The position numbers and the translations under genes are program-made. Shown here piece after piece: positions 6,845 through 60,074 of a stretch of 64,000 nucleotides of DNA. The stretch is from Macrostomum hystrix. Its lineage: Eukaryota > Animalia > Platyhelminthes. The notes under the pieces were generated by a model. It searched no databases and had not been told where the DNA came from. It saw nothing but the letters and a program-made list of their open reading frames with translations. Where the stretch lies: assembly GCA_950097015.1 (NCBI GenBank), contig CATNEN010000011.1:3658001-3722000 (forward strand). Direction: 5' to 3'. The number at the start of each line of letters is the position of its first letter. Position 1 is the first letter of the stretch.

Positions 6845-7862
6845 TTCACTATAAACCTACCGATTCTTAGTCTATAAACCCACCAATTACCTGACTATAA
6901 ACCCACCGATTACCTGACTATAAACCTACCGATTCTTAGTCTATAAACCCACCAATTACCTGACTATAAACCCACCGATTACCTGACTATAAACCTACCG
7001 ATTCTTAGTCTATAAACCCACCAATTACCTGACTATAAACCCACCAATTACCTGACTATAAACCCACCAATTACCTGACTATAAACCCACCAATTCCCAG
7101 ACTATAAACCCACCAATTACCTGACTATAAACCCACCAATTACCTGACTATAAACCCACCAATTACCTGACTATAAACCCAACAATTACCTGACTATAAA
7201 CCCACCAATTACCTAACTATAAACCCACCAATTACCTGTCTATAAACCCACCAATTACCTGACTATAAACCCACCAATTACCTGACTATAAACCCACCAA
7301 TTCCCAGACTATAACCCACCAATTCCCAGACTATAATCCACCAATTCCCAGACTATAAACCCACCGATTACCTTACTATAAACCCACCAATTACCTGACT
7401 ATAAAACCACCAATTACCTGACTATAAACCCACCGATTCTTAGTCTATAAACCCACCAATTCCCAGTCTATAATCCACCAATTCCCAGACTATAACCCAC
7501 TAATTCCCAGACTATAATCCACCAATTCCCAGACTATAATCCACCAATTCCCAGACTATAAACCCACCAATTCCCAGACTATAATCCACCAATTCCCAGA
7601 CTATAAACCCACCAATTCCCAGACTATAAACCCACCAATTACCTGACTATAAACCCACCAATTCCCAGACTATAAACCCACCAATTCCCAGACTATAAAC
7701 CCACCAATTACCTGACTATAAACCCACCAATTCCCAGACTATAAACCCACCAATTCCCAGACTATAAACCCACCAATTACCTGACTATAAACCCACCAAT
7801 TCCCAGACTATAAACCCACCAATTACCTGACTATAAACCCACCAATTACCAGACTATAAACC
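6845..7862. repeat. 23-bp minisatellite (GACTATAAACCCACCAATTACCT)n
   Basis: Period 23 measured (7261 to 7284); ends about 20 bp from the exon 2 donor. Confidence 0.95.
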
Positions 7863-7884
7863 CACAGAAAAGCACTGTACAAAC

Positions 7885-8444
7885 CTGTTTGAGCCGCTTC
7901 TCAGCCGTACTGGCACTGCCAGACTGCCCGGCCTCCTCAAGTCGGTGTCTCTCCTCCTTAGCGGCCACGAGTTTAGTCTCGGCCTGAGCAGCCTGACCAT
8001 GAGCCAGCTGATAGGTTCTCAGAGTTTGGCCAACTTGTTTCACATTGTCCATGACGTCCTCCTGACCCGCTAGGCACATATCGCGACAGCGTTGAAACAA
8101 TTTGTTGGAATTCTCCCTGATGTCAGTAAACCTGGGAGCCATTTTGGTGCCAAATATTTTAGCCACAACGCCATGATTGACAGCTTGACTGTGAGTTATG
8201 CCGAGAATGGTTTTGTAGAATTTGAACAACGAGTAACTGCTGGCCCCGGCTACAGAACGATTCCGTTCCAATTGACGCAGTCTATCAACTCGCGAGTTGA
8301 ACAATTTTTTCAAATCCTTCGAATATTGTTCCTCAATTTCGGCTCGACGCCTATAGAACTCGGTCAGGTCGAGCAGTACGGCGCTCTCCCAGTCCAGCCG
8401 AGTCTCCATGAGGCGAAGCTGCTCCGTGAGCTGAACTCGCAGCT
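7885..8444 (-). CDS. SRGAP: srGAP-like gene, coding exon 2 (FCH/F-BAR domain)
   Basis: ELRVQLTEQLRLMETRLDWESAVLLDLTEFYRRRAEIEEQYSKDLKKL is a typical FCH domain. CAG acceptor at 8447-8445, GT donor at 7884; 560 nt, phase 1 in and phase 0 out. Confidence 0.9.
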
Positions 8445-11929: not shown

Positions 11930-13256
11930 ATGTTTTCCCTATTTGTGTTTCTGCAAGCCATTTTAGCTTACTTTCTTCCCATGAAAAAAGGCTGTTTGTG
12001 CGATACGGATGATCTACTGGTTTCCGCGGTTGAAAGGGATGACGCTTCTGAGCTAGAGAAGAGAATTTCAAGTGACGCGTTCCATGATCGTTTTATACGA
12101 TATTCTGAGCACAGTTTTACACCACTAATGCTGGCGTCCTTCTTGGGTAAAATTCACACTGTGCAAATACTGTTAAAATATGTCATAGATATAGACAAGC
12201 AAAATGAAAATGGAAAAACAGCGCTCTATATGGCTTCTGAGGAAGGTCATCAGGAAACTGTCGATTTGCTTATCGAAGCAGGAGCCGATGCGAATGTTCA
12301 AACTGCGACAGGCAACTCAGCTCTGTATATCGCTTCAAAAAACGGTCATCAGCACATTGTCGATTCGCTTATAAGATCGAAAGCCGACGTCGATCTACTA
12401 GAACACTCTGGCTGGTCACCTCTATACATTGCATCACTGAATGGACATCATCTCGTTGTCGATTCATTGATTAAAGCTGGAGCATATATCGATATTAAGT
12501 TATACGACTATTCTTCTCCATTGCATATTGCTGCTAGCTGTGGTTTTTATCGAGTGTTAAAATTATTAATCGAAGCTGGTGCAGACTTGGATCTTCAAGA
12601 CAGCTCAGGCGAATCGCCCGTCTACAAGGCAGCAAAATTGGGCCGTTATAAAGTGACAACTTTGCTGAATGAAGCCGGTGCTGGTATCGATCGGGCAAAT
12701 ACATCCGGATTAACACCTCTCTACATAGCGGCGCATTTTCAGCATGATTTGACTGTAGAATTACTGATAAGAGAGTTAACAAAGTTACCTGACCGACTCG
12801 CGTCCATTGAGTCCACGAGGAAGCTTGCATTAAAATTCAACAACGACCATGTAGTAAAAGCAATCGACCATGCTCAGTCGTCGTCGTCGCCATCGCACAG
12901 AGCCGAAACTGATGAGGAGCTGAGCTCGCTGCTGCACTCTAAACTCTCTGAGTCGGGTTTTGTGGACTCCAGAGCCGCCTTACAGAGCGCATCGGCTGAT
13001 GTGCTGCAAGAAATTGTCAGAAAACGAAAGCGACTAAACAGTACTAATGATGGTTTTTTCATTGTCGGCAGCTTCTCAGAAGGCTGGTGTAACAGCCTGG
13101 TGACTCTAGATGGCAGAACTGATGCCGACTCCGACATCGACGTATTGACTATTAAAGATCCAAGAATACGCGAATTTCATTTAGAAGGTCACTGCAAGTG
13201 CGATGTGCCCTCAAAAGTGCGCTACACCAATGGGCACATCGAGGCGACTGGATATG
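11930..13256 (+). CDS. Ankyrin-repeat + Mab-21/cGAS-like nucleotidyltransferase (cGLR), exon 1
   Basis: About 7 ankyrin repeats (TPLMLAS, TALYMAS, SALYIAS, SPLYIAS, SPLHIAA, SPVYKAA, TPLYIAA), then the NTase signature VGSFSEG...DSDID. G|GTGAGA donor after 13256 (phase 1). The true start may be the ATG at 11981. Confidence 0.85.
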
Positions 13257-13403
13257 GTGAGAGAGTGAGAGCACAAGTATTATGATAAAATCCGCACTAC
13301 GAGCCTTTTATATATCTGCTCTGCATTATTTTATTGCCTAAGTAATGCGTCATGATTATTGCGTAACGCTCATAGTTAACTTCAAAGATTAGCCGTAGAG
13401 TCC

Positions 13404-13470
13404 CAGGGTGGGAAAAGTACGGCCCGCGGACCAGATACGCCCCTCGAAGCTTCCAAATCCGGCCCGTTAC
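13404..13470 (+). mobile_element. Degenerate hAT/Charlie-type terminal sequence
   Basis: CAGGGTGGGAAAAGTACGGCCCGCGGACCAGATACGCCC resembles the CAGGGGT...AACTACGGCCCGCGGGCC end of animal hAT/MITE families. The partner end was not found. Confidence 0.45.
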
Positions 13471-13589
13471 CCCTTCCGACTCCTACAGTATCCTCTTTGC
13501 CCTGTCTCATCTCTCCTCGGCCTCGTCTCTTCCGTGTCTCATCTTTCCCCAGTCTCGCCTCTCCTGCGTCTCATATCTCGCGTGTCTCA

Positions 13590-14140
13590 TCTCTCCTGTT
13601 TCTAATCCATCTTGTGTCTCATCTCTCCTGTTTCTAATCCATCTTGTGTCTCATCTCTCCTGTTTCTAATCCATCTTGTGTCTCATCTCTCCTGTTTCTA
13701 ATCCATCTTGTGTCTCATCTCTCCTGTTTCTAATCCATCTTGTGTCTCATCTCTCCTGTTTCTAATCCATCTTGTGTCTCATCTCTCCTGTTTCTAATCC
13801 ATCTTGTGTCTCATCTCTCCTGTTTCTAATCCATCTTGTGTCTCATCTCTCCTGTTTCTAATCCATCTTGTGTCTCATCTCTCCTGTTTCTAATCCATCT
13901 TGTGTCTCATCTCTCCTGTTTCTAATCCATCTTGTGTCTCATCTCTCCTGTTTCTAATCCATCTTGTGTCTCATCTCTCCTGTTTCTAATCCATCTTGTG
14001 TCTCATCTCTCCTGTTTCTAATCCATCTTGTGTCTCATCTCTCCTGTTTCTAATCCATCTTGTGTCTCATCTCTCCTGTTTCTAATCCATCTTGTGTCTC
14101 ATCTCTCCTGTTTCTCATCCATCTTGTGTCTCATCTCCCT
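13590..14140. repeat. 32-bp minisatellite (CTCATCTCTCCTGTTTCTAATCCATCTTGTGT)n in cGLR intron
   Basis: Period 32 measured; about 16 near-identical copies. Confidence 0.95.
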
Positions 14141-14666
14141 TTTTCATCTCTTCTCTGTCTCATATCTCTAAGAGAGATGTGATTTCGGAACTCGTTTGGG
14201 CCATAGAATAATGCGCATAAGACGTAATGTGTATTATGTCTTTGGCGGCGATCACTTTCAAGGCTTCGGCATACTACACAATCAACTATTGTGTCACAGA
14301 CATGGAAATAATTAGTATTTTACGTTTAGCATACAAATATAATATAATGCATACAAATACATTCTCGCAAAATAATGTATGAACGAGTTAGCAAATAATA
14401 AAACTACATGCCAAAAAACTATATTTATCTAATTTTAATAGCATACATACGTAGTTTAACTACTGGTAACGCAAAAGCTACAAGCTATATTTACGACTGC
14501 ATTCGGCCAACTACGCTTGCACAAGTATATGACGTACAAGTATTATTTTATTGAGTCGTGTGTTGGGTTAGAACTAGTTCGTAATTAAAATACGAACGCA
14601 AGGGGAAAAACTTCCCGTGAATCGATTTACATAACAACATTCGCCTAATCATTTCCATTAACGAAG

Positions 14667-16105
14667 CATCGACGCCTGGAGAAAAAGTACCTGGTTTCAA
14701 ACTGAGGCCGACGGTAGAGCATGTCCAGTCCATCCGTGTGTGCAGCTACCCTCCCATGGCGCCACTGCAGCCTGACCGTATCTCCAGATCGAAAATCGCC
14801 AAGTCTATGCAGTCGTTGAAAGAGATAGAACCTGCTTCATCGCCTTGTCACGTTGTGCAAGCAGCACCTCCTGGAAAGGAGGGGAAGCAGCTCAGAGTGA
14901 GCACCAGTTTCCTTGAGAAGCGACTGTTGCGGAGTCTCAGCACTCTGCAGGGCCAGCTGTTCGTCACACTCAAGTGGCTACTCAAGAAAGCAGTCCGCCA
15001 CAACGGATTCCGGTCATATCACGCGAAGACCATCATTTTCCGGATGCTAGAAGAGACACCGGCAGAACAGTGGAAGCCGGAGAATCTCGTGAGTCTAACG
15101 AGACGCTCGCTGAAGATGCTGCTTGATGGAATTGAGAGCGGCTACAAATCAGACAAACCTGATGGTCGGATTCTGGATCACTACTTCCTAAGCGACGCCG
15201 CTGTTTATCTCAGAGGATTGGACATGGGTTCGGATGAGAGTGTGATTGAAGGCATGAATCAAGCAGCCAAAGCTATTCGATATGTCATTGAAAAGCTGCC
15301 TGAGCTCCTGGTGCAATTCAAGGACAGCCTGCGACCAGTCACCAACTCGGGTCGGTTCCACTTCCATCCTTTCCTCATTTTACCATTTCTGCATCACGTT
15401 TCGATATCAAGCTTAGAGAAAGTTGAATACATTGAAATCTACGACGTTGTAAGAGAGTCGGTTCTTCGTCTCTCTGACGAAAACTGCAACCGCGAGTCAA
15501 TGATGACTTTCTTGAAGCAAATAATTGAGAAGCTGCCAGACTGTGCCCGGTCAGCGCGAGAGTCTCTGAAAGCGTTGACATACCTGAAGTTCGGTGACCG
15601 AGCGAAAGCGGAGGAAATCATAGACAACTGCATGGATTTCAGCGTGAGCAGAGGCATCAAGTGGAGTCCGGAAAAGTCAACGGATGACGCGACCTCAGAC
15701 TATGTTTGGAAATACCTGGAAAACAAAAAAGACTCCACATGGAAGTTCAGCTTTCAATTTTCGCATCCTCCAAAGCTTCCCTTCGAAAATGAGCTTAAAA
15801 ACATCTTACCCTTAAAATTCGAAGAATACATGGACGGTTATTATCTAAACATCGAAGCTCTCCTTCATGCTCTCCGCTATGAGATGTTAAAATCGACAGA
15901 GAAGTCAACTCAAGACTGGATCCGGCATGTGGTCCACAGTGAGGAAGCGGACGAACAGGAGCTTGCGGTGGCTGCGGTGAGCAGTACAGACGTGGAGCTG
16001 CTGCTACGTCTGCAGAAGAAGTTTATTAAAATTCGCGGCTGCTCTCCTGATTGGCTTGAGGAAAAGATCGATCAGATCAATCAGGCCGGCAGATTTGCAC
16101 CGTAA
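14667..16105 (+). CDS. ANK-cGLR exon 2 (Mab-21 core and C-terminal helical extension)
   Basis: Frame is open from 14621. An AAG|CA acceptor before 14667, with a CTAAT branch-like motif ~20 nt upstream, gives a phase-1 join (..TGYASTPG..RPTVEHVQS). Mab-21 motifs LRVSTSFLEKRLL, LKWLLK, SYHAKTIIF..LE, QW..ENL, LDHYFL. Spliced product about 920 aa. Confidence 0.85.
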
Positions 16106-16860: not shown

Positions 16861-16886
16861 CCTGCGAAAAACAAAACACACGAACC

Positions 16887-18038
16887 TGTGATTTCCAGCC
16901 CTCTATCTACATGTGCCACTCAGTCTCGGATTCTGTGATTTCCAGCCCTCTGTCTACATGTGCCACTCAGTCTCGGATTCTGTGATTTCCAGCTCTCTGT
17001 CTACATGTGCCACTCAGTCTCGGATTCTGTGATTTCCAGCCCTCTGTCTACATGTGCCACTCAGTCTCGGATTCTGTGATTTCCAGCCCTCTGTCTACAT
17101 GTGCCACTCAGTCTCGGATTCTGTGATTTCCAGCCCTCTATCTACATGTGCCACTCAGTCTCGGATTCTGTGATTTCCAGCTCTCTATCTACATGTGCCA
17201 ATCAGTCTCGGATTCTGTGATTTCCAGCCCTCTATCTACATGTGCCACTCAGTCTCGGATTCTGTGATTTCCAGCTCTCTGTCTACATGTGCCACTCAGT
17301 CTCGGATTCTGTGATTTCCAGCCCTCTGTCTACATGTGCCACTCAGTCTCGGATTCTGTGATTTCCAGCCCTCTATCTACATGTGCCACTCAGTCTCGGA
17401 TTCTGTGATTTCCAGCCCTCTATCTACATGTGCCACTCAGTCTCGGATTCTGTGATTTCCAGCTCTCTGTCTACATGTGCCACTCAGTCTCGGATTCTGT
17501 GATTTCCAGCCCTCTGTCTACATGTGCCACTCAGTCTCGGATTCTGTGATTTCCAGCCCTCTGTCTACATGTGCCACTCAGTCTCGGATTCTGTGATTTC
17601 CAGCCCTCTGTCTACATGTGCCACTCAGTCTCGGATTCTGTGATTTCCAGCTCTCTATCTACATGTGCCAATCAGTCTCGGATTCTGTGATTTCCAGCCC
17701 TCTATCTACATGTGCCACTCAGTCTCGGATTCTGTGATTTCCAGCTCTCTGTCTACATGTGCCACTCAGTCTCGGATTCTGTGATTTCCAGCCCTCTGTC
17801 TACATGTGCCACTCAGTCTCGGATTCTGTGATTTCCAGCCCTCTGTCTACATGTGCCACTCAGTCTCGGATTCTGTGATTTCCAGCCCTCTATCTACATG
17901 TGCCACTCAGTCTCGGATTCTGTGATTTCCAGCTCTCTATCTACATGTGCCACTCAGTCTCGGATTCTGTGATTTCCAGCCCTCTATCTACATGTGCCAC
18001 TCAGTCTCGGATTCTGTGACTTCCAGCCCTCTATCTAC
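16887..18038. repeat. 47-bp minisatellite, ~24.5 copies
   Basis: Unit TGTGATTTCCAGCCCTCTGTCTACATGTGCCACTCAGTCTCGGATTC; period 47 measured. Confidence 0.95.
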
Positions 18039-20915: not shown

Positions 20916-23900
20916 CTGCGACTATTCCTACACTCTCTGCAAACTCTGATGTTGAGGTTTACATCGAGAGGCTAGATCAGTACCTGGTCTACAAGGAAGT
21001 TAAAGACGAAGCGAAGGTTGCAACCCTGATCACAGTCATTGGAGAAGAGGCATACAAGCTGCTCCGCAACCTGTGCCTGCCAGACGCAGTGTCCTCCAAG
21101 CCCTACGAAACGTTGACACAGCTGCTGAAGGATCACTACGCTCCAAAAACATCAATGCTCTCGGCCAGATTTCGTTTTCAGCAGCGCATCCAGAGACCCG
21201 GCGAGAGCTTCACCGACTTCGTTGCCGGTCTCAAAGCAGCTTCTGAGCACTGCAAGTTCGGCATTTACTCTGACCGAGAGGCTACGCGACCAGCTCATCT
21301 TCGGCATACGCAGTGACGCCCACCGAGCGAAGCTTCTGGAAGTCGAGGATCCGACTTTTGATGCCCTGACTAAGAAGATTGAAACGCTGGAGACGGCAGA
21401 GATGTCCTCATCCGAGATGACACACAGGGCCGAGCCAGTGGCCCACCTGCGCCCGCACAGGAACCCGTCTGGAGCCAAGGGAGTCAAGGACGTCAGCAGG
21501 CAAGCTCCTCGCCGGTCAGCTGCCAGCTTCGCTGACCCAGCTCGGGCAGCGCAGTCGTGCTCGGCCGCAAGTGCGTGTGCAAGCTGCGGCGGCGCCCATA
21601 GTCGGCAGCAGTGTAAGCTGCGCGAGGCCAAATGCTACGGCTGCGGTAAGGTCGGCCACATCCGGAAGGTGTGCAAGTCATCCAGGCTGCACAAAGTAGA
21701 TCCCGAGCCGGCTGAGGCGCAGGAGCCCCTTTTCAGCCTTAGGCAAGGCGGATCAAGCAAGGGACTGGTAGTCAAGTTGCTTGTTCAGGGCAGCCCATGC
21801 TGTTTCGAGGTGGACACCGGGTCCGCCCTCACTGTCATACCCAAGAACCTGCAAGAGGAGGTCCTGCCGGACTTGCGCTTGTCGCCGACCTCCACGGTGC
21901 TGCGTACCTACACTGGAGAAAGCTTTCGGCCAGTCGGGCAGGCGGAGGTCACCGTCCAGCACAACAGCCAGGACCTGCGGCTGCCACTGCTGGTCGTCGA
22001 ACAAGGCGACGTCGCGTTGCTCGGCCGAGACTGGCTGGCGAAGCTGAAACTTGACTGGCCGAGGATCTTCGGGCAAGTCAACTCGGTGACTGGCGAGGCG
22101 GATGGTCTGATCGCGCAGTTTCCCGAGGTCTTCCAAGGCGGCCTGGGCACCTATCGGCACGGCGAGGTGAAGCTGCATATGCCTGCGGAGGCTAAGCCAC
22201 GCTTTTTCAAGGCCAGGCCGGTCCCCTACGCGCTCCGAGAACGCGTTGACGACGAGCTTCGGCGGATGGAGGCGGACGGCATCATCACATCAGTCAAGTA
22301 CTCAGACTGGGCGGCGCCCATCGTGCCCGTGGTTAAGAAGAACGGTGCAGTGCGGATCTGCGGAGACTATAAGCTGACCTACAATGCGGAGGCTACGCCA
22401 GAGCTGTACCCGCTGCCGCGCATCGAAGACTTGTTCGCTAAGTTGGGCGGCGGCTGCAAGTGGTCCAAGCTGGACATGTCGAACGCCTTTCTGCAGCTGC
22501 CCCTGTCTAAGGACAGTAAGATTTTCTTGACCATCAATACGCATCGAGGTCTGTTCCAGCTGAACCGCATGCCATTTGGCATCAACTGCACCAACTGCCG
22601 TGTTCCAGCGCACGCTCGACTCTCTGCTCGGTGACCTGGAGTCGGTGCAAGTCTTCGTTGACGATATCCTGGTGACAGGCAGAACTCTGCAGCATCATCG
22701 CGAGAATCTCACCAAGGTCCTTCAACGCCTCCAGGAGGCGGGTCTACGGTTAAACAAGGACAAGTGCGAGTTCTTCCGCGACTCGGTCGATTACCTGGGC
22801 CATCGGATCGACAGCCAAGGTCTGCGGCCGCTGGCGGAGAAGGTGACGGCAGTGCAGGACGCGCCGGCGCCCACTGATTGCAGTCAGCTTCGAGCCTATC
22901 TCGGCATGCTAACTCACTACGGTAAGTTTCTGCCTCATCTGTCTACCGTGGTCGCTCCGCTCAACCAGTTGCTGACTAAGAACGCCCGCTGGTGCTGGGG
23001 AGAGCCCCAGCAGCTGGCCTTCCAGAGGTCCAAGCGCCTACTGCTCGAGTCTCCGGTGCTTGTTCACTACGACTCGAAGCTGCCGCTGCGATTAGAGTGC
23101 GATGCCAGCCCCTACGGACTCGGCGTGGTGCTGACACATCGCATGGACGGCCAGGACCGAGCGATCGCCTTCGCCAGCCGCAGCCTGACTACGGCTCAGA
23201 AGGGCTACTCGCAGCTGGACAAAGAGGCCCTTGCGATCATGTTCGGCCTCCAGCGTTTCAATCAGTTCCTGCAAGGCCGCAAATTTGTCATCGTGACCGA
23301 CCACAAGCCGCTCCTGGGACTTCTAGGCGAGCACAAAGGCATCCCTGAGCACGCGGCTGCCCGCATGCAGCGCTGGGCGATCCGCTTGGCTGGTTATGAC
23401 TACGCGCTTGAGTTCCGGCCCACCAGCAAACACGCAAACTGCGATTCACTGTCCCGGCTGCCGCTGCCAAGACAGTTCGAGGAGGAGCCGGCCGTAAACG
23501 CCCTGCTGCTCGACGAGGAGACCGGGTCTGCTATCACGGCTCAGGCGGTGGCACGGCACACGCGTTCGGATGCTACCCTCGGCCGGGTGCTTCGCTGCCT
23601 GCAGACTGGCGCCCCGATGGCGTCGTCGGACTTGACAGACTTCACGAGGCGGCAAGACGAGCTGAGCGAGCAGGGCTGCGTGCTGTGGGGTGCCCGAGAG
23701 GTACCGACGGCCCTGCGGCAAGGCGTGCTGGATGAGCTTCACCAGGCGCACCCCGGCATCAACCGCATGCGAGCGCTGGCCCGCAGCTACATCTGGTAGC
23801 CCGGTCTGGACAGGCAGCTCGAGACGACCGTCAAGGCCTGCCGGACCTGCATGCTGAACCAGGCCGATCCGCCCAAGGCGCCGGTGCAGCCGTGGCCGTT

Positions 23901-24833
23901 CCCAGCCGAACCGTGGGCAAGGCTGCACATTGACTTCGCCGGGCCCGTCAACGGCCGCACCTACCTGGTCATTGTGGACGCCTTCAGTAAGTGGCCGGAG
24001 GTTCTGCAGGTGCACAGTGTGACGGCGGCGGCGACCATTGGGCGTCTTCGTGAGGTTGTTCGCGAGACTGGGCATTCCGCGCGTGCTGGTCTCTGACAAC
24101 GGCACGCAGTTTACCTCAGGGGAGTTCAGCGAGTTCACCAGGCGCAACGGCATTCGTCACGTCTTCTCGGCGCCCTTCCACCCGGCCACGAACGGCCAGG
24201 CGGAGAGATTCGCGCAGGTGCTCAAGCGACATCTGCTCAAGAGCGGCCACTCGACAGCCGCACTGCAACAAATGCTAATTTCCTACCGCAACACGCCGCA
24301 CTCAATCACCGGCGCGGCCCCCAGTCAGCTGCTCATCGGTCGCAGACTACGCAGCCGGCTGGACCTACTGATGCATGCAGCAGCGCCAAGAGCAGCAAGT
24401 GGAGCAGCAGCCGCGAGCACGCGAGTTCCATGCCGGCGACCCAGTGCTGCTGCGCGACTTCAGCTCGGATGCCAGGACCGGCGGCGGCCGCTGGACAGAG
24501 GGCACTGTCGTTTCCGCCGGGTCCCGCAACTGCGCCGTCGATGTTCGCGGAACTATCCACCGGCGGCACACAAACCAGCTGCTGTCGGCCGCCCTCCCAC
24601 CGCCGACAACTCCCGTGACCCCGCTAGTAGTCACAGCCGAGGCACCGTCGACCTTGGCGGAGCCTGGCGGTCAGGAAATCGAGGCGCCAACAGTCGGGGC
24701 AGCCGCCGACGCCACCGACGCCGCCGACGCCACCGACGCCGCCGACGCTAGCGATGCAACGTCCCCGACAGACACACCAGCTCGTCGCTACCCGCTACGG
24801 CAAAGGCAACCACCCGAGCGGTTGCAATCGTGA
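20912..24833 (+). pseudogene. gag-pol polyprotein of the LTR element, interrupted
   Basis: Gag with twin CCHC knuckles (CASCGGAHSRQQC, CYGCGKVGHIRKVC), protease VDTGS, RT (WAAPIVPV, FVDD), RNase H (CDASPYGLG), integrase HHCC plus core (HIDFAGP, SDNGTQF, NGQAER). Frameshifts at ~21265, ~22590, ~24055, ~24375 and a TAG at 23797-23799. Confidence 0.92.
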
Positions 24834-58210: not shown

Positions 58211-58647
58211 CAGGCGAATTTCAGTTGGACTGACGACAAACTCGAATAAGATATAAGCACACTTGGAGGCTATTGAGTTGACAATACTCTGTCTCTTGTC
58301 TTGCTTTTTCTCATCCCGAACCATCACTGCTCGGACACCCGAGGAGTCACTCCAACTGCCCGAGCCCCAGGGCCTCCAACCAGTTGCCAGACTGCAGCCA
58401 TAAATATTTTCATACGCGCGGCTGTCCTTTTGTCCCAGCAGCTATTCAATTATCTCAGATTCAATGAGTAGATTTCCGAGCGTTTGATCAGGCGCGGCCA
58501 AGTTCATTAGTCATCAGCCAACGAAAAGTGCTCAATGCTCAAACACTGCGATTGTAAACAACAGGCACAATGTACGAGCTACTAATAAAATGCAGTTTCT
58601 TTATAAAAGAAGCCAAATAATTCACTCCAAAAACCACAATCCTGCAG

Positions 58648-60074
58648 GTAACATCGCCACATTGCCAAGAAGCGCTTGCCTGGTGTGGTACAGTCTAGAC
58701 GTGTTCTTCACAGCGTCCACAATCATTCACCTGTGCACAATCTCCATTGATCGCTACTTTGCGCTCAACAATCCGCTGAAGTATCACAGGCAGAAACGCA
58801 AATCAGCGCTGGTAGTGAAAATAGTTTGCACCTGGCTGATACCGTTCTCTATTGCCGGACCGCTGTTCGCATTCGCCCTGTGGCTGGACACGGCCGACGA
58901 AGACTCGTTCAAAGGCTGCGGACCGCACAATGCGTATTTCATCATCACAGCCACTGTGGTGACCTTCTTTCTGCCACTGATGATCATGACGGTCACCTAT
59001 GTGCTCACGGTGAGCACAATCGTGCGTCAGACAAAGGATGCGCGTGACCTGAACGCCTCGCTGCTGCCGCTGGTGCTTCGACCAAGCGCACAGGCGTTCG
59101 GCCTCAAGCGCGGCGCCGCCCGCGCCGCCGGCGGTCGCAAGAGCACCGGCCTACTCAACAGCCCATTCTTCAGCAGGCAGTCGTCGAGTTTTAGTAATCT
59201 GTTGCGCTCAAACAGTCATCAGCAACAGCAGCAGGAATCAATGTCTGCATCTTCGCCGTCATCGCCAAGGGCTTCTTCGACGTCGGCATCTGTCACGAGT
59301 CCAAGCAGACAGCGCCTGCTTCCGCCGGCCTCACCGGCCACCGCGTCAGTCAGGCATCGTCGATCTCATTCCCCGTCGCAGCTGTTGGAACCTCCACCAG
59401 CCATGTCGTCGTCACGTTCGCCAACCCGACAGGCTTCAGTAGGTGCAAACGAAAACGGCGATGCCAGCGGTGGTGGCAGCGGTGGGATGGTACGCCTCCT
59501 CCGAGTTCCTAGTCGAGTGTCGGTCTCTTCCGTCTACTCTGACGACGGCATGCTCATCCCGTCGTCCTCAACGGGACGTCGACGCGCTGATAGTATTTCC
59601 AGCGGCTGCGACTGCGCGGCCGAAGCCATCGAAACCACTGGAGGTGATGGAGCTGGTGGCTCAGCGGAAAAAAAGTTGAGCTTCTCACTGGTCACGCAGA
59701 ACGCTAAACGGACGTACAAGCCGACAACCAGCAGTGAGCAGAAGAAACGCATGGACTACATCCACCGCGGCTCCAAAGCTGTGCAAGTGTTGGGCATCCT
59801 ATTTGGCCTGTTCGTGGCGTGCTATCTACCGTTCTTCATAGCCTACCTGATTGACTATTTCTGTGTCGCCTGCCGCTTTGTGACGTCAACCATGGTGCCC
59901 ATTCTTGAGTGGGTGGCGTACAGCGCCTCAATGCTGAACCCGATCGTTTATCACTTCTTTAATCCGACATTTCGCAAGACCTTCCACAGGCTGATGCGCT
60001 GTCAGTGCCAGCGTTACGGCTCCGTGAAGCGGCCCAACTATGTTTTCACCTATAAGATCGGACGGCCGGCTTGA
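58648..60074 (+). CDS. Aminergic (5-HT2-like) GPCR, second coding exon (TM3-TM7, C-term)
   Basis: CTGCAG|GT acceptor, phase 1 matching exon 1. CLVWYSLDVFF..IHLCTISIDRY, FFLPL.IM.VTY, KAVQVLGI.F..F..CYLPFF, NPIVY..FN..FR. Joined product 574 aa with a long Ser-rich ICL3. Confidence 0.92.

Follow-up and report, generated by a model that had tools for sequence, protein, structure and literature searches.

cGAS-like receptors (cGLRs) are a major family of animal pattern-recognition proteins, most of which remain orphans. Flatworms are commonly described as having no cGLR-STING immunity. We analyzed a 64-kb stretch of the genome of the flatworm Macrostomum hystrix, hereafter called the window (positions 3658001-3722000 of contig CATNEN010000011.1, our C11, in an assembly of 220 Mb and 42 contigs), which carries a predicted gene for a cGLR fused to ankyrin (ANK) repeats. 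The closest described systems are found in the survey of Li et al. 2023 (PMC9980059), where cGLRs fused to ANK repeats or to tetratricopeptide repeats (TPR) are minor architectures, where protein-protein or ligand contacts are proposed for the ANK fusions, and where several ANK proteins of Macrostomum lignano stand in the domain table; "most platyhelminthes" are described there as having no cGLRs beyond Mab21-like proteins. According to the accessible part of that report, five M. lignano members of the family were cloned for a screen of 140 enzymes with double-stranded DNA (dsDNA) or poly I:C, and M. lignano construct no. 89 (PAA86972.1), which carries the motifs of the ANK-cGLR family, begins at the GF..R.A helix and is therefore devoid of ANK repeats. 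The 15 enzymes active in the screen are described as coming from insects, anemones, molluscs, hydras and corals, and no flatworm is named among them (PMC9980059). Apart from this catalogue, no publication on cGLR or STING biology in Macrostomum came up in our literature search. A preliminary description of the window, made from the letters alone, had presented the gene as an undescribed system. This did not survive comparison with the survey, since ANK-fused cGLRs are listed there and M. lignano members are catalogued and cloned: the window gene is a divergent new member of an already catalogued ANK-cGLR family.

We put at roughly 80% the probability that the locus is an intact two-exon ANK-cGLR gene, of a family shared with M. 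lignano, whose product would be an enzyme making a messenger for STING-like proteins. The gene model is built on two open reading frames (ORFs) of the plus strand, both located where the preliminary description placed them: ORF1 at 11930-13285 (451 aa) and ORF2 at 14738-16105, whose frame stays open upstream to 14669. That description had joined them by a GT-AG intron into a protein of about 920 aa, and the junction bears closer examination well. The intron is in phase 1 (Table 1), the joined product is stop-free over about 904 codons and would count about 904-921 aa. Both splice sites are canonical, the donor reading ATG/GTGAGA after 13256 and the acceptor ..ACGAAG/CA before 14667. The codon split at the junction, G/CA, encodes Ala, and the join reads ..TGY-A-STPGEK..; contiguous M. 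lignano proteins, 50-57% identical, span the same place uninterrupted and read ..PGYASKP.. or ..GFASTP.. there. In 7 of the 9 paralogues sampled from the same genome, a GT..AG intron of phase 1, 70-1154 nt long, interrupts exactly the same codon, typically with the splice sites G/GTGAG ... CAG/CC. Because the intron divides the nucleotidyltransferase (NTase) core, between the strand that bears the DxD motif and the strand that bears the third acidic residue, neither ORF codes for a domain on its own. In DNA of about 45% GC, two open frames that each exceed 450 codons are far beyond chance.

These observations also bear on the idea that each ORF is a gene of its own, with only ANK repeats in one and only Mab-21 in the other, or that a member of a large family is decaying here, unexpressed. 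The pyrimidine tract of the acceptor is poor, some paralogues carry stops, and the model at this locus is read from DNA, all of which would suit such an idea; but an intron placed inside the NTase core, at a position conserved in paralogues, together with the continuity of the M. lignano proteins across the junction and two fully open frames, makes it highly improbable. ORF1 and ORF2 are thus predicted to form a single intact gene. For the start codon, ATG 11981 (MKKGC.., 904 aa) appears more likely than the first in-frame ATG at 11930 (921 aa), because a pyrimidine-rich ..TTTTAG acceptor-like site directly precedes it. No ANK-coding frame was found upstream on the plus strand between 8400 and 11930.

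The assignment to the cGLR family was examined at the level of sequence profiles and of predicted structure. An exhaustive HMMER search with exon 2 matched 174 cluster representatives with E-values below 1e-3, of which 78 fell below 1e-10. Among ten clusters whose names were looked up, nine are named, all of them from M. lignano, and the tenth, the Mab21+TPR relative P0098, is without a name. Among the scanned members of the ANK clade, Ank-type matches were present in all 15 and Mab-21_C matches in 13, several of the latter above the cut-off. A family profile, derived from an alignment in which both window exons are rows, matched the solved structure of cGLR1 (8GJY) with an E-value of 3.5e-20, cGAS with about 1e-14 (5e-14), MB21D2 with 5.6e-9 and Mab21L1 with 2e-8. 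The matches to cGLR and cGAS cover profile positions 61-347, and the homology spans the NTase core as well as the C-terminal helix bundle.

The structure was modelled with AlphaFold2 for residues 500-1117 of P0006, a homologue 57% identical to the window protein, using an alignment of 71 sequences. The model has a predicted local distance difference test (pLDDT) of 93 and a predicted template modelling score (pTM) of 0.92, and the top 50 Foldseek matches are all cGAS, with probability 1.0. A VIA alignment superposes it on human cGAS (residues 162-521) with Z 19.5 and a root-mean-square deviation of 3.6 Å over 268 residues; the Z-scores are 19.2 for MB21D2 and 18.5 for the oyster Cv-cGLR1. In the model, GS and DxD are located on strand 1, the following loop and strand 2 of the NTase sheet. 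Sequence profiles and homologue model together support the window protein as a member of the ANK-fused cGLR family with a Mab-21 fold. Both the identity and the cGAS-like fold had been proposed in the preliminary description.

The catalytic motif of the window protein, counted exon by exon with the split codon added, reads IVGS-x20-DIDV-x53-VEH. Two cGLR motifs were defined by Li et al. 2023 (PMC9980059), a strict one, h[QT]GS-X8-20-[DE]h[DE]h-X50-90-h[DE]h, and a looser one, G[S/G] + [E/D]h[E/D]-X50-90-[E/D]. The window fits the looser motif in full, and its spacing and all its acidic residues fit the strict motif too. All nine paralogues sampled keep the GS, the DxD and a third Asp, as do almost all members from M. 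lignano. More than 30 members were compared, mutually only 25-60% identical, and nearly all keep GS, DxD and the third acid. This conservation of the triad argues for a working enzyme as the candidate activity. The site had been called intact beforehand, with a third acidic residue as a candidate; this agrees with the count given here, and the motifs then listed (SSSSPS, GSFSEGW, DSDID, RPTVEHV, SYHAKT, LDHYFL and, in the tail, LKALTYLKFGDRAKAEEI) were all recovered where they had been placed (Table 1).

Several points weigh against our reading of the locus as an enzyme-coding ANK-cGLR gene linked to STING-like proteins. The gene model is based on genomic sequence and on comparison with homologues and paralogues, and the fold evidence comes from the 57%-identical homologue and from the window's own tail. 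The Pfam check of the domains proposed earlier held for the ankyrin part (Ank, E 3.5e-42) and not for the Mab-21 part: Mab-21_C scores 21.4 bits on exon 2 alone against a cut-off of 24.1, and neither window ORF matches the Mab-21 NTase model (PF03281) above its gathering score; the core is interrupted by the intron and has diverged, and among the scanned proteins PF03281 matches only in distant Mab21+TPR relatives. Within the catalytic motif, Val precedes GS where the strict motif has Q or T, a His follows the third-acid Glu (VEH, against h[DE]h in the strict motif), and the third acidic residue is Glu in the window copy against Asp in 9 of 9 sampled paralogues. None of the five M. lignano members that were screened figures in the set of enzymes found active with dsDNA or poly I:C (PMC9980059). 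Lastly, the Pfam STING_LBD model (PF15009) picks out one frame on contig C2, with 25-25.6 bits against a cut-off of 27.

Part of this evidence would fit a scaffold that has the Mab-21 fold but no enzyme activity, a pseudo-enzyme in the manner of Mab21L1 or crustacean Mab21, and that signals through protein contacts of its ANK repeats and tail. Such a scaffold would agree with the missing Pfam NTase match, with a Glu that is seen at the third acidic position only in the window copy among the sampled sequences, and with the survey of Li et al. 2023 (PMC9980059), in which no activity is reported for the ANK-cGLR family; crustacean Mab21 proteins, according to the accessible part of a 2026 paper (PMC12928593), act outside nucleic-acid sensing. 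We nevertheless consider it unlikely: Glu is a conservative change that the cGLR motif permits, and the retention of GS, DxD and the third acid across so diverged a set of proteins is difficult to account for unless catalysis has been under selection.

Compared with the described systems, the window protein is closest to the ANK-cGLRs of M. lignano (PAA86972.1, PAA45980.1; P0005-P0086), which present the same order of ANK repeats, linker and cGLR core followed by the same tail. They share with it the motifs GF..SRA, GSF.EGWGN, DG.TD..SDID, H..C.C..NGH and RPA.D.V, as well as LRVSTSFLE, SYHAKT, FHPF, LPDCA and DSAWKF. The closest are 57-61% identical to the window protein, and no close one-to-one partner was found among the sampled sequences. 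The window gene differs from them in having its ANK repeats and core on one exon, a Glu at the third acidic position, and seven ANK repeats against up to a dozen or more in the relatives.

Outside Macrostomum, the nearest sequence relatives are Mab21+TPR cGLRs of about 700 aa (P0098, P0101, P0103, P0114, and P0104 from Sinanodonta woodiana). Their C-lobe matches with E-values of 1e-4 to 1e-8, and their GS, DxD and third Asp align with ours; Cv-cGLR1 of Crassostrea virginica (PDB 8GJW), to which the homologue model was compared above, is grouped with the bivalve-type members of this set. Unlike the ANK-cGLRs they carry a C-terminal TPR array in place of N-terminal ANK repeats, their tails are not detectably homologous, and they have no H/C/C/H motif of the kind described below. 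Human and mouse cGAS (PDB 6CT9 and 4K9B) have the bilobed Mab-21/Pol-beta NTase fold in common with the homologue model (Z 19.3-19.5) and share the GS loop, the acidic triad and the SYH.KT and ..YF. motifs of the C-lobe, at 17-20% identity in the structural alignments. In contrast to cGAS, the ANK-cGLR lacks both a zinc thumb where cGAS has one and a disordered basic N-terminus, and it carries ANK repeats and a tail of 260 aa in addition. Human MB21D2, an orphan cGLR with the same fold, is the product of a single-copy vertebrate gene and has neither ANK repeats nor tail. The coral ANK-cGLR fusions of Li et al. 2023 also combine an ANK module with a cGLR core, a likeness drawn from their description only.

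In the window protein, the segment that follows the DxD strand and precedes the strand of the third acid contains a motif of the form H-x4-C-x-C-x11-H (ORF1 residues 417-436). As H-x4-C-x-C-x11-13-H it is kept in almost all ANK-cGLRs of both Macrostomum species and is absent from the Mab21+TPR relatives. In the P0006 alignment its residues are H105, C110, C112 and H126, which do not occupy the position of the cGAS zinc thumb. The motif may represent a lineage-specific zinc site.

The N-terminal part of the protein is made of ANK repeats, and the expected number of about seven, followed by a Ser-rich linker, was obtained. Pfam detects Ank (140 bits) and Ank_2 (E 7e-41, 139 bits) on ORF1, both above the gathering score, and the seven repeat cores are regularly spaced by 33 aa, at ORF1 residues 62, 95, 128, 161, 194, 227 and 260. 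The stretch equivalent to the linker is modelled with low confidence in the homologue: its first blocks of ten residues have pLDDT 44 and 75, and residues 1-8 are below 50. Over the ANK region the window protein and M. lignano P0008 are 38-40% identical.

In the mechanism that we propose, the enzyme would rest inactive, like other cGLRs. Upon encounter with its ligand it would produce, from nucleoside triphosphates, a cyclic or linear oligonucleotide second messenger, which would probably be read by the divergent STING-like proteins of the genome. The ANK module would most likely sense the activating ligand, or else tether and auto-regulate the enzyme, a point on which we can only speculate. 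The nature of the ligand is where a more classical scheme competes, in which the core itself senses double-stranded RNA or DNA, like cGAS and Drosophila cGLR1, and the ANK repeats serve only for localisation, oligomerisation or downstream contacts. The activators of cGLRs known to date are all double-stranded nucleic acids (PMC9980059), the cGAS-like fold of the homologue model takes in both lobes and, with them, the N-terminal spine helix, and the window core is mildly basic, with a net charge of about +4 to +5 and an isoelectric point (pI) of 9.6 for its exon-2 part. On the other hand, core pI varies from 6.0 to 9.8 in the family and exceeds 8 in only 12 of 25 members; the zinc thumb of cGAS is absent, a different H/C/C/H motif being found elsewhere; and the absence of the M. 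lignano constructs from the set of enzymes that showed activity with dsDNA or poly I:C, although weak as negative evidence, points the same way. We regard direct activation by nucleic acid as a tenable but rather doubtful account of this protein.

A bolder extension of the ANK-cGLR reading would make these proteins a receptor repertoire, whose variable ankyrin arrays sense ligands other than nucleic acids (pathogen proteins or modified host proteins) following a "bait" logic similar to that of NLRs, with a signal passed to divergent and possibly soluble STING-like proteins, the H/C/C/H motif being a new zinc site. We think it improbable as a whole. A regenerating and genetically tractable flatworm could be a good place in which to seek a non-nucleic-acid activator of cGLRs.

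The expansion of paralogues that the preliminary description proposed to look for is large. Exon 2 has at least 91 matches in the genome, its own locus included, out of 174 first-look candidates, and most of them are stop-free; several are clustered on contigs C3, C18 and C1. This genome, like that of M. lignano, thus appears to hold about a hundred ANK-fused cGLR genes, next to STING-like genes that form a small family. When 35 sequences were placed in a maximum-likelihood tree, the copies from this genome and those from M. lignano interleaved and seven label changes were needed; the tree therefore indicates that the ANK-cGLR family diversified before the split between M. hystrix and M. lignano. 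The window gene has a long branch to itself (0.58) within a fully supported subclade of nine members, and it is a singleton within the window. The best cross-species identities of the nine sampled paralogues range from 43 to 78% and lie between 63 and 78% for six of them, so that the 57-61% of the window protein is within the range. By itself the locus adds one divergent member with a clean two-exon structure and leaves existing knowledge unchanged.

The ANK arrays seem to be replaced more quickly than the enzymatic part of these genes. Two paralogous loci that form a young pair, L004 (C2:4861620-4868200) and L005 (C18:13157-19700), have core exons 92-95% identical, with a ratio of non-synonymous to synonymous substitution rates (dN/dS) of 0.48-0.63, and show no alignable ANK region within the 3-4 kb upstream that the fetched loci cover. 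In L004 the ANK frame is open over more than 1034 aa, and an extra intron lies between it and the core.

Proteins able to receive a messenger were sought in the same genome. The STING-like frame on contig C2 has 14 genome matches, its own locus included, and seven of the 13 others are on C2 at 8.97-9.08 Mb. The corresponding cluster of STING_LBD-like matches (C2:8967258-9105038) holds eight of them within 140 kb, two being the halves of one broken locus, and further STING_LBD-like loci are present on C7, C38 and C39 (family set L001, L002, L013-L022). A profile of ten STING-like paralogues matches only STING chains in the PDB, with E-values of 1e-3 to 7e-3; the match concerns mainly the first helix, while the ..YATP.. 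strand matches collinearly but more weakly. Pfam detects no TIR domain and no second STING domain beside the C2 frame. These STING_LBD-like proteins are candidate receptors for the cGLR expansion.

The C-terminal tail was modelled on the window's own sequence, with pLDDT 87.4 and pTM 0.86; it is predicted to be mostly helical with two short pairs of strands. No significant relative of this fold was found, whether by Foldseek in the PDB (best E 0.13), by a wide VIA search (Z at most 7.9) or in the ESM Atlas (template modelling score at most 0.48). TPR and other helical-repeat proteins head these match lists, at the background level expected for any helical domain. The tail had been described as "TPR-like"; Pfam finds no TPR match in the window ORFs, and hhalign of the tail against genuine TPR tails gives a probability of 0.7%, on a single hairpin of 21 residues. 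Taken with the background-level fold matches, these results do not support a TPR reading of the tail. The features of the gene and its surroundings are collected in Table 1.

Table 1. Positions in the window of the predicted ANK-cGLR gene, its domains and motifs, and neighbouring features
Feature	Positions	Strand	Content or basis
Exon 1	11930..13256	+	ANK repeats, linker, N-terminal half of NTase core; first in-frame ATG 11930
Seven ankyrin repeats	12113..12790 (approximate)	+	Pfam Ank / Ank_2, repeat cores
Linker	12791..12919 (approximate)	+	motif positions; Ser-rich SSSSPS at 12878-12895
N-terminal half of cGAS-like core	12920..13256	+	spine helix (LS..L...GF..SRAALQ), GS, D-I-D, H/C/C/H motif
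GS	13067-13072	+	within GSFSEGW, 13067-13087
D-I-D	13133-13141	+	within DSDID, 13127-13141
H/C/C/H motif	13178-13237	+	H-x4-C-x-C-x11-H
Intron	13257..14666	+	1410 nt, phase-1 GT-AG; position and phase kept in paralogues
Minisatellite in intron	13582-14145		32-bp unit, 17.7 copies, 99% matches
Exon 2	14667..16105	+	third acidic residue, remaining NTase sheet, Mab-21 C-terminal helical lobe, tail; TAA stop 16103-16105
Third acidic residue (Glu)	14717-14719	+	in RPTVEHV, 14705-14725
SYHAKT	15014-15031	+	C-lobe motif
LDHYFL	15173-15190	+	C-lobe motif
Family-specific tail domain, 262 aa	15317..16102	+	AlphaFold2 on the window's own sequence
LKALTYLKFGDRAKAEEI	15566-15619	+	tail segment flagged by the preliminary description
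Second minisatellite	16886-18000 or beyond		47-bp unit, at least 23.7 copies, 97% matches
FCH / F-BAR domain exon	7846-8409	-	E 1.5e-10
Ty3/gypsy-type retroelement	21222-24751	+	overlapping frames
Rhodopsin-family receptor frame	58590-60074	+	494 aa, E 6e-37

The surroundings of the gene were also inspected. Two minisatellites, both long and near-perfect, accompany it, one inside the intron and the other about 800 bp downstream of the stop. The neighbouring genes, an exon coding for an FCH / F-BAR domain and a frame for a G protein-coupled receptor of the rhodopsin family, are not immune-related. The window also contains, at 55-62% GC, a Ty3/gypsy-type retroelement with overlapping frames for aspartyl protease, reverse transcriptase, RNase H and an integrase zinc finger.

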